From Blastocystis sp. Blastoise (taxonomy: Eukaryota; Protista; Bigyra: Opalinata): a stretch of 64,000 nt of DNA. The stretch spans positions 310,001 to 374,000 of the forward strand of contig JBBPEB010000021.1 in NCBI GenBank assembly GCA_039096225.1, given 5' to 3'. The notes beneath the pieces are model-generated. The model was not told the origin of the DNA and did not search any database. It saw only the letters and a program-made list of their open reading frames with translations. This document shows, one piece after another, positions 32,943 through 34,338 of this stretch (position 1 is the stretch's first letter; the number at the start of each line of letters is the position of its first letter). The position numbers were made by a program, and so were the translations under genes.

Positions 32943-34338
32943 ATGGAAGCAATAGAAGATATTATTGATTTTTATAAGGATAATGAAGAGCATATGCCTC
33001 TTCTTATAGCAACAGCTTGTTTTTGTGTCATCTGTTTGTTGACTTTAGTTAAGTGTTGTTGTTGTAAAAAGAATAAGAAAGGAGGTCATATCATAGAGGA
33101 AGTCAGGCCGATCGTGAAAGATGAAAAAACACAGAAAATCGAGGTCTTAGAGGATGACAAACCTGAGAATCATCCAGGAATGAAAAGAATCTGTAAGTAT
33201 TGTCAAATTGAAATTGCTTCTGACGAAACTTGGAATCAGCATAAGCACACTGAGTTTCATCGATCTCGTGCATCATCTATGGACATGGATTATTGTATTT
33301 CTTGGGTTCCTTCTAATGATCAAAAACCTGTGAAGCCAGCTGTTGTAAAGCCAAAGCGAGTTGTAATTGAGCAAGAAATAAAACAATATTTACAAGAAAC
33401 AAAAGGAGAATGGGTAGATGTTTCTAAGAATCAACAGTCTTCAGGAAAATGTCAATGCTTTAACAATTATCGTTATATGCTTGTATATTTATACTATATT
33501 TATTATTATTATTATGTTTATTATTATTATTATTATTATTATTATTATTATTATTATTATTATTATTATTATTATTATTATTATTATTATTATTATTATT
33601 ATTATTATTATTATTATTATTATTATTATTATTATTATTATTATTATTATTATTATTATATATAGGGTTCTCATAATCTCCTTGAGCACTTCTCCGTCAC
33701 CATTGGAGCATTTAAAAAGGTTAAAATAGGTACATATATGAAAACAGTGAACGATATGATTACCAAAGGACAACAAGGTAAATTGAGCGGGAAGACTTAC
33801 CGCGTTATCAAGAATAATTCTGAGGGATTCCCTATTCTTCTTAATACAGGTATATATAGATAGTTTTGTATAACTATATATATATATATATATATATATA
33901 TATATATATATATATATATATATATATACAGGTTCTTATGTAAATGAGAGAGGAGTCGTATTATCCACAAAAGATGTTGAACCCTACCCTCAATCGATAA
34001 GTGCCCTTGTTCGTTCTCTTCAGGATCAGAAAGTGATCAAAGGATATCCTTATAGTATCACATTCCAAAAGTTTACTACTGGTCAGCATTCGTTAATTGA
34101 AAAGGAAAAGGATAAGAATCATATAGTTATACTTATTCCCCTCGGGGATAACTGTGAATTGACTCTTGGATCTCCCCTTCAACAGAATGACGATGGCTCT
34201 TTCGATGGATATGTCACCATTAATCTTCAGAACGGTAGTATTATCTCTATGAAGGACGATCTTCCCTCCTCTGTCTCCAGAGTCGTCGCCGCTGTCGCCA
34301 GAGACTTCGTACTCCTCACCATGCGTATTAAAATATAA
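32943..34338 (+). CDS. N-terminal TM helix + Cys cluster, C2H2 (matrin-like) zinc finger, and C-terminal ALKBH9/ALKBH5-like AlkB fold lacking catalytic residues; 3 exons (32943-33482, 33666-33849, 33932-34338)
   Basis: The spliced frame is open end to end: LLIATACFCVICLLTLVKCCCCKK; CKYC-x12-HKHTEFH; NLLEHFSVTIGAF...KGQQGKLSGKTY...VEPYP...PYSITFQKF...LGDNCELTLGSPL...GSFDGYVTINLQNGSIISM...VLLTMR. Confidence 0.75.

Follow-up and report, generated by a model that had tools for sequence, protein, structure and literature searches.

Positions 32943-34338 of the window, by which we mean the whole 64,000-nucleotide (nt) stretch of Blastocystis sp. Blastoise DNA analyzed here (contig JBBPEB010000021.1 of assembly GCA_039096225.1, positions 310,001 to 374,000 of the forward strand), hold a plus-strand gene of three exons. 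It is a real, expressed and spliced gene of a tortoise-gut Blastocystis, and it is under purifying selection. With modest confidence, we favor the view that its product is a membrane-anchored zinc-finger protein in which a catalytically dead AlkB-like domain would act as a binding module. The gene structure was established by reading the sequence and translating each exon. Features on which the argument draws are listed below, in window coordinates.

32943-33482, plus strand: exon 1, codons 1-180, with an acidic N-terminus, predicted transmembrane helix, CCCC-KKNKK, zinc finger and linker, followed by the donor GTATAT in phase 0
32994-33050, plus strand: hydrophobic helix, residues 18-36, a predicted signal anchor (Kyte-Doolittle 19-residue maximum 2.59)
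33054-33080, plus strand: juxtamembrane Cys38-41 and K42-K46 (KKNKK), a candidate S-acylation and polybasic patch read from the sequence
33192-33260, plus strand: C2H2 zinc finger C84-x2-C87-x12-H100-x5-H106, by pattern match
33483-33665, plus strand: intron 1, GTATAT...ATATAG, mostly (ATT)n, not in the GenBank protein
33666-33849, plus strand: exon 2, codons 181-241 and the first base of codon 242, where the AlkB-like domain begins; covered by the X1 and X2 transcript contigs
33850-33931, plus strand: intron 2, GTATAT...ATACAG, mostly (AT)n, missing from the X1 and X2 contigs
33932-34338, plus strand: exon 3, codons 242-376 and the TAA stop, with the predicted core strands of the AlkB-like domain
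34099-34107, plus strand: E298-K299-E300, candidate for the AlkB HxD position, placed by weak BLASTP on H131-Q132-D133 of Escherichia coli AlkB (positional lead only)
34279-34326, plus strand: R358 to R373, the last two predicted strands, without histidine in the sequence
34339-34414, plus strand: 3' untranslated region (3'UTR) up to the X1 contig end at 34414, with TGCTTTGTT immediately after

Joined together, the three translated exons give a product of 376 amino acids identical to KAK8799534.1, listed in GenBank as hypothetical protein WA158_006083 of Blastocystis sp. Blastoise. The translation of exon 1 is identical to residues 1-180 of this record, and an exhaustive HMMER search of 1.84 billion representatives matched exon 3 with its residues 243-376 at 100%. 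Exons were concatenated solely for codon numbering, for substitution classes and for this identity check; in whole-protein searches the database record KAK8799534.1 was the query, and exons were searched singly. A prediction made earlier from the letters of this stretch (the original prediction) held that splicing yields one intact protein, as the identity with a single GenBank record confirms. It also described the gene as visible only in the form of unrelated fragments, which does not stand, as GenBank annotates one hypothetical protein. The gene is single-copy in the 33.3-Mb, 34-contig assembly. The content of guanine and cytosine (G+C) in the window is about 23%, and three tortoise Blastocystis isolates are described as having 21-23% G+C and long, variable introns (PMC12129017).

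Spliced transcript contigs were found in two runs, X1 and X2, which come from two independent studies; they were compared with the window over 33600-34600. Run X1, probably the strain's own RNA library, contains a 1084-nt contig comprised of exon 2 (record 420-603) and exon 3 with 76 nt of 3'UTR (record 608-1084). It lacks intron 2 and extends a further 419 nt upstream of exon 2. The contig in X2, a poly(A) animal-gut metatranscriptome of the other study, is 444 nt long, likewise lacks intron 2, and has 137 nt upstream of exon 2. Of the two junctions for which the original prediction had proposed a check by RNA sequencing (RNA-seq), the one across intron 2 is therefore seen in both runs, while the exon 1-exon 2 junction is not seen directly in transcripts and is inferred on three grounds. 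First, X1 contains 0.71 of the sampled words of 32900-34400, which requires the upstream 419 nt to lie inside this stretch. Second, a perfect (ATT)n repeat of 142 nt lies in intron 1, and a 31-mer contig cannot cross it. Third, the pipeline behind the GenBank model demanded RNA-seq support for introns (PMC12129017). Directly past the transcript end, TGCTTTGTT at 34415-34423 is similar to the downstream gene element with a TGTTTGTT/TGTTGTT core that is reported for human Blastocystis subtypes (PMC12129017).

The X2 strain is diverged by a few per cent, and this allowed substitutions in exons 2-3 to be classified. Among 22 differences, 14 are synonymous and 8 non-synonymous, the latter mostly conservative. 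The ratio of non-synonymous to synonymous divergence, a comparison that the original prediction had called for, is about 0.15 against this one diverged strain (Nei-Gojobori; dN 0.018, dS 0.119, dN/dS 0.15), and the deficit of replacements is significant (binomial p = 3.5e-5). None of the replacements hits E298, E300, R358, F367 or R373. The C-terminal domain is functional coding sequence.

In 2-oxoglutarate (2OG) oxygenases, iron is held by a 2-His-1-carboxylate triad, whose HxD/E motif is part of strand II and whose distal His comes from strand VII. Within residues 181-376 of the protein, histidines are present only at 183, 188, 294 and 305, and no HxD/E motif is formed. Histidine is absent altogether from the C-terminal 71 residues, where the final six strands are predicted. 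Since an HxD/E is missing from 181-376 and no histidine follows 305, a canonical iron triad cannot form on this sequence, whichever alignment is adopted. Loss of the iron-binding residues, as originally proposed, thus stands without recourse to an alignment, and an alternative HxD...H triad is not found anywhere in residues 181-376. At the C-terminus, R365-D-F367-V-L-L-T-M-R373, inspection of the motif tentatively places the last arginine in agreement with RxxxxxR, with phenylalanine six residues before it. Given the loss of the iron ligands, we predict no demethylase activity on N6-methyladenosine (m6A).

Structural affinity of this domain was assessed in the ESM Atlas, which holds the exact protein. 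Residues 181-376 of the Atlas model align with land-plant clusters named PF13532 2OG-FeII_Oxy_2, ALKBH10B_N and 'RNA demethylase ALKBH10B' at template-modeling scores (TM, by query) of 0.83-0.86 over 186-195 residues, with an ALKBH8-type cluster at TM 0.84, and with a 207-amino-acid giant-virus AlkB at TM 0.71/0.68. Every row listed in the structure search belongs to the AlkB/2OG family, in six different cluster sets, and the AlkB set makes up 23 of the 30 named feature neighbors. Exon 3 alone drew a 2OG-oxygenase cluster at 0.91. Both sides of this comparison are predicted models, and the feature and structure searches count as one line of evidence. Because a wrong or disordered model would not reach such scores against six sets of one superfamily, we consider it likely that residues 181-376 adopt an AlkB-type double-stranded beta-helix. 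The predicted fold is closest to the ALKBH5/9/10 RNA-demethylase group, and the protein probably descends from domains of this type. The ALKBH9/ALKBH5-type fold put forward originally is thus supported by the Atlas, where plant ALKBH9/10-type models are nearest, while no sequence or profile method and no AlphaFold2 (AF2) model recovered it, as detailed below.

The N-terminal half has its only strong hydrophobic segment at residues 18-36; the best Kyte-Doolittle window starting after residue 60 reaches 1.3. Net charge is -6 over the 18 residues before the helix and +5 over the flank KCCCCKKNKKGGHI after it. One hydrophobic segment of ~19 residues combined with asymmetric flanking charge is, as far as sequence goes, the pattern of a single-pass signal anchor. 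Following the positive-inside rule, which predicts membrane topology from flanking charge, these values imply a reverse signal anchor, with the N-terminus outside and the bulk of the protein in the cytosol. A cytosolic C-terminal side is also the orientation compatible with the zinc finger. Cysteines right after a transmembrane helix are a classic S-acylation context, and Cys38-41 may be S-acylated; at least 15 DHHC acyltransferase loci are present in the same genome.

Spacing in the zinc finger fits the C-x2-C-x(8-14)-H-x(5-6)-H pattern of the matrin/U1/JAZ group, whose members bind RNA or double-stranded RNA. Its best Pfam matches are below threshold (zf-C2H2_jaz, E 0.0088, 16.6 bits vs a cut-off of 22.6; zf-U1, E 0.059, 13.6 bits vs a cut-off of 22). 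An AF2 model of residues 72-125 has a predicted local distance difference test score (pLDDT) of 74 and a strand-strand-helix arrangement; Foldseek matched it only with other small zinc fingers, at non-significant E-values that do not separate subtypes. Sequence searches of the PDB with residues 1-180 and with the finger returned nothing relevant. The order of transmembrane helix, CCCC-KKNKK and CxxC-x12-H-x5-H, another element of the original prediction, was recovered in full.

To place the gene in its genomic background, six-frame searches were performed throughout the 33.3-Mb assembly. They revealed no PF13532 (E up to 1), P4H-type PF13640 or JmjC domain, with the limits that such searches match exons one by one and that the JmjC search had no positive control. 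MT-A70 and YTH domains were found in them, and an m6A writer and readers are probably present in the genome, as judged by these matches. The MT-A70-like and YTH-domain exons are located at G000:C26:171576-171740, G000:C34:919998-920162 and G000:C4:233598-233738. The tortoise isolates are grown anaerobically, and 2OG dioxygenases need O2.

According to the mechanism we propose, the reverse signal anchor would leave both the finger and the dead AlkB-like domain on the cytosolic side of a membrane, where S-acylation of the four cysteines and the polybasic patch would perhaps reinforce anchoring. Without iron ligands, the AlkB-like domain would not be able to oxidize anything. The anaerobe has seemingly shed its oxygen-dependent 2OG dioxygenases, and the AlkB-like domain would have been retained for binding. 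It and the RNA-type zinc finger would jointly keep RNA, which might be methylated, or a ribonucleoprotein (RNP) at the membrane. RNA would be the likeliest ligand, because both cytosolic modules belong to nucleic-acid-binding classes, and a preference for methylated RNA is conceivable at most. We also considered an eraser-to-reader transition, i.e. an ALKBH5-type m6A eraser fold turned into a non-catalytic, membrane-tethered reader or anchor in an anaerobic gut protist. There, methylated or single-stranded RNA would be recognized by the dead AlkB pocket, with extra affinity contributed by the matrin-type finger, and the acylated signal anchor would keep the mRNA or RNP so bound attached to the membrane. 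Such a reader would operate alongside the MT-A70 writer and the YTH readers that remain in the genome. This scenario is speculative, and we regard it as distinctly doubtful.

A number of results weigh against a membrane-anchored protein with a dead AlkB-like domain, and most of them concern the fold. Pfam gave no AlkB family at E up to 10 with exons, KAK8799534.1 or residues 175-376, and the gathering score of PF13532 was not reached. Matches to Pfam HAD_SAK_2, Ig_J and DUF5974, obtained with exons, full protein and sub-ranges, were discarded as noise, and a PHROGs search of the protein gave noise only. PDB sequence searches with exon 3 and with residues 170-376 returned nothing relevant. The exhaustive search of 1.84 billion representatives with exon 3 found, besides itself, spurious Ig/Calx-beta repeat matches. 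These other phmmer matches are bacterial repeat proteins, mostly Ig-like, Calx-beta or SprB, in which each unit scores about 0.003 pairwise and E-values are inflated by repetition; they were rejected as chance. Word-indexed searches of 5.8 billion clustered proteins with the whole protein, residues 181-376 and exon 3 recovered the protein itself or nothing, and no relatives of the C-terminal domain were found in metagenome contigs and viral contigs. With human-type Blastocystis, even core orthologs share only about 40% identity, which limits what can be read from missing relatives.

For direct comparison, an AlkB reference set was assembled from E. coli alkB, taken from an annotated genome, with 80 bacterial and 3 viral relatives, and 24 sequences were aligned. 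Comparing the domain with this 24-sequence bacterial AlkB alignment in hhalign gave a probability of 0.2%, and the AlkB hidden Markov model (HMM) scored it at -1.8 bits, equal to the average over 2000 shuffles. A pairwise BLASTP alignment with E. coli AlkB is collinear over 97 residues at E 0.057, no better than chance by a shuffle test. Because the shuffle test shows no signal, the alignment of E298-K299-E300 with the HxD position has the value of a positional lead only. Sequence homology to bona fide AlkB proteins was therefore not detectable by pairwise BLASTP to E. coli AlkB or, with the bacterial set, by hhalign and HMM. In addition, confidence of the Atlas model over the whole protein is modest (predicted TM 0.48, pLDDT 0.55) and represents one language-model line only, and the AF2 single-sequence model of residues 170-376 is unusable (pLDDT 36), its Foldseek matches in the PDB being meaningless. 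We file the domain as a predicted AlkB-like pseudo-enzyme and not as an AlkB demethylase, because profile match, triad and detectable sequence homology are all lacking.

These findings would fit a fast-evolving, lineage-specific beta-rich domain without AlkB ancestry, for which the ESMFold matches would be false positives or the outcome of generic jelly-roll convergence. Every sequence and profile test is negative, as such a domain would have it, AF2 gives no confident fold, the Atlas is only modestly confident, and the phmmer matches are chance ones to beta-sandwich repeats. However, TM values of 0.83-0.86 extend over nearly all 196 residues and involve six cluster sets that are all AlkB/2OG, and even in the poor AF2 model the order of secondary structure is helix, strands, helix and six C-terminal strands. 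Absence of AlkB ancestry is in our opinion unlikely, although it has to be taken seriously.

The next points concern the ligand. An inactive AlkB-like protein might not bind RNA at all; it could instead bring other proteins together at the membrane as a scaffold or adaptor, e.g. in concert with the divergent RING-finger neighbor or the ubiquitin-like genes nearby. This possibility shares everything with the reading we favor except the ligand. The subtype of the zinc finger remains below Pfam thresholds, the opposite strand carries a RING-finger gene 260 nt upstream, and a gene for a ubiquitin-like protein is found at 36566; all three are in line with a scaffold. On the other hand, AlkB-type domains and x12-H-x5-H fingers usually bind nucleic acid, and gene neighborhood means little in eukaryotes. 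A scaffold is thus an unlikely explanation, yet one of some substance.

The X1 contig begins near 33066, about 417 nt ahead of exon 2 in the transcript and just past the transmembrane and CCCC codons, and the first 41 codons (32943-33065) are not covered by RNA reads here. The main product might then be soluble, with a start past the helix, e.g. at Met80, i.e. a cytosolic or nuclear protein with zinc finger and AlkB-like domain, the transmembrane-CCCC segment being an artifact or part of a minor isoform. Against this, the sequence reads as an uninterrupted, coding-like frame from the first ATG (32943) onward, and the RNA-seq-built GenBank model starts at the same place. Ends of short-read contigs are often arbitrary, and the word share of 0.71 in X1 is slightly above what the single 1084-nt contig accounts for. 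A soluble main product is accordingly improbable. It is highly improbable that the AlkB-like domain has kept enzymatic activity by way of a non-canonical metal site (e.g. E298/E300 and other ligands) or acts on a substrate other than methylated RNA. In favor of this, two glutamates may occupy the HxD place in a weak alignment, and purifying selection shows that the domain matters. Against it, the domain has no HxD/E, its last 71 residues are free of histidine, the first arginine of RxxxxxR would be phenylalanine on motif inspection, the organism is an anaerobe while 2OG dioxygenases need O2, and no 2OG oxygenase is known to us whose site consists of carboxylates only.

Neighbors of the gene are ordinary host genes, coding for a nine-repeat HRM protein, a WD40 protein, a RIC1-like protein, a RING-finger protein and a ubiquitin-like protein. 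Viral origin of the gene was rejected for now, given its two spliceosomal introns and these neighbors. The RING-finger open reading frame (ORF) of 59 amino acids is located at 32501-32680 on the minus strand, in divergent orientation (zf-RING_5, E 9e-9), and may be one exon of a larger gene. The HRM protein is encoded at 15800-20158 on the plus strand by an intronless ORF of 1452 amino acids, with nine Pfam HRM repeats (hormone receptor domain, PF02793; E 5.7e-75) and a weak fn3 match, an animal-type extracellular module in a gut stramenopile.

Repetitive segments were observed further downstream in the window. A degenerate satellite of about 2.6 kb occupies 50108-52738 and is built of 9-, 11- and 20-nt units (ATATAGATAAT and variants); the 50-52 kb bin has a strongly positive GC skew (+0.78). 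At 59050-60047, about 333 copies of TTC form a run that overlaps with an ORF of 342 amino acids (59046-60074), and GC skew ranges from -0.76 to -0.85 in the segment 56000-60000, with an AT skew of about -0.55. Elsewhere in the assembly, G000:C16:304883-306586 on the minus strand encodes a Methyltransf_11 protein in an open frame of 568 amino acids, with a long Asn/Arg/Asp/Tyr-rich repeat tail (NNRDY-like units). Inspection of the surroundings of eight Methyltransf_11 loci in the assembly revealed no ALKBH8-like gene.

If the fold call is true, the protein would be a natural AlkB-type pseudo-enzyme under purifying selection in an anaerobe, and in one that shows no recognizable 2OG dioxygenase of the three families searched. 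It would offer a test case for what eraser folds do once catalysis is impossible, and for membrane sorting of m6A-marked RNAs in protists. More generally, it would show that known folds may be concealed in the Pfam-blind hypothetical proteins of fast-evolving protists and come to light by structure prediction only. Practical importance is limited for now, the protein being known from one lineage.

In the literature searched, no inactive membrane-anchored AlkB-type protein is described, and the combination of signal anchor, CCCC-KKNKK, matrin-type finger and AlkB-like domain occurs in no database match or literature searched, in accordance with the original claim that this architecture is undescribed. 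The closest known systems are plant ALKBH9B and ALKBH10B and animal ALKBH5 (PF13532, ALKBH10B_N). The Blastocystis domain resembles them in predicted fold (TM 0.83-0.86 over 181-376), in domain size and in C-terminal strand order. It differs in that it has no Pfam match and no HxD...H triad, and in that histidine is missing from its last 71 residues. Compared with ALKBH9B and ALKBH10B, the plant-type N-terminal extension is replaced by a transmembrane helix, CCCC-KKNKK and a zinc finger, and the host is an anaerobe.

ALKBH8, which functions in tRNA wobble-uridine modification, is built as RRM (RNA recognition motif), AlkB, zinc finger and methyltransferase. In it, too, a single chain combines an AlkB domain with a zinc finger and an RNA-binding module, and the ALKBH8-type cluster is matched at TM 0.84. 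Unlike ALKBH8, the protein studied here has no RRM and no methyltransferase, its finger is N-terminal, and it is predicted to be membrane-anchored, with an AlkB part that lacks iron ligands. With fingers of the matrin/U1 and JAZ types (zf-U1, zf-C2H2_jaz, zf-met), its finger shares the C-x2-C-x12-H-x5-H spacing and its best Pfam matches; in contrast to them, it is below the cut-off (16.6 vs 22.6 bits), present in a single copy, and placed 40 residues from the membrane anchor. JARID2 and Epe1 are inactive JmjC proteins of chromatin, in which 2OG-oxygenase folds are used for binding or scaffolding. They belong to another branch of the superfamily (JmjC, chromatin) than the predicted AlkB-type domain, but present the same situation as proposed here, an oxygenase fold kept under selection after loss of its catalytic ligands.

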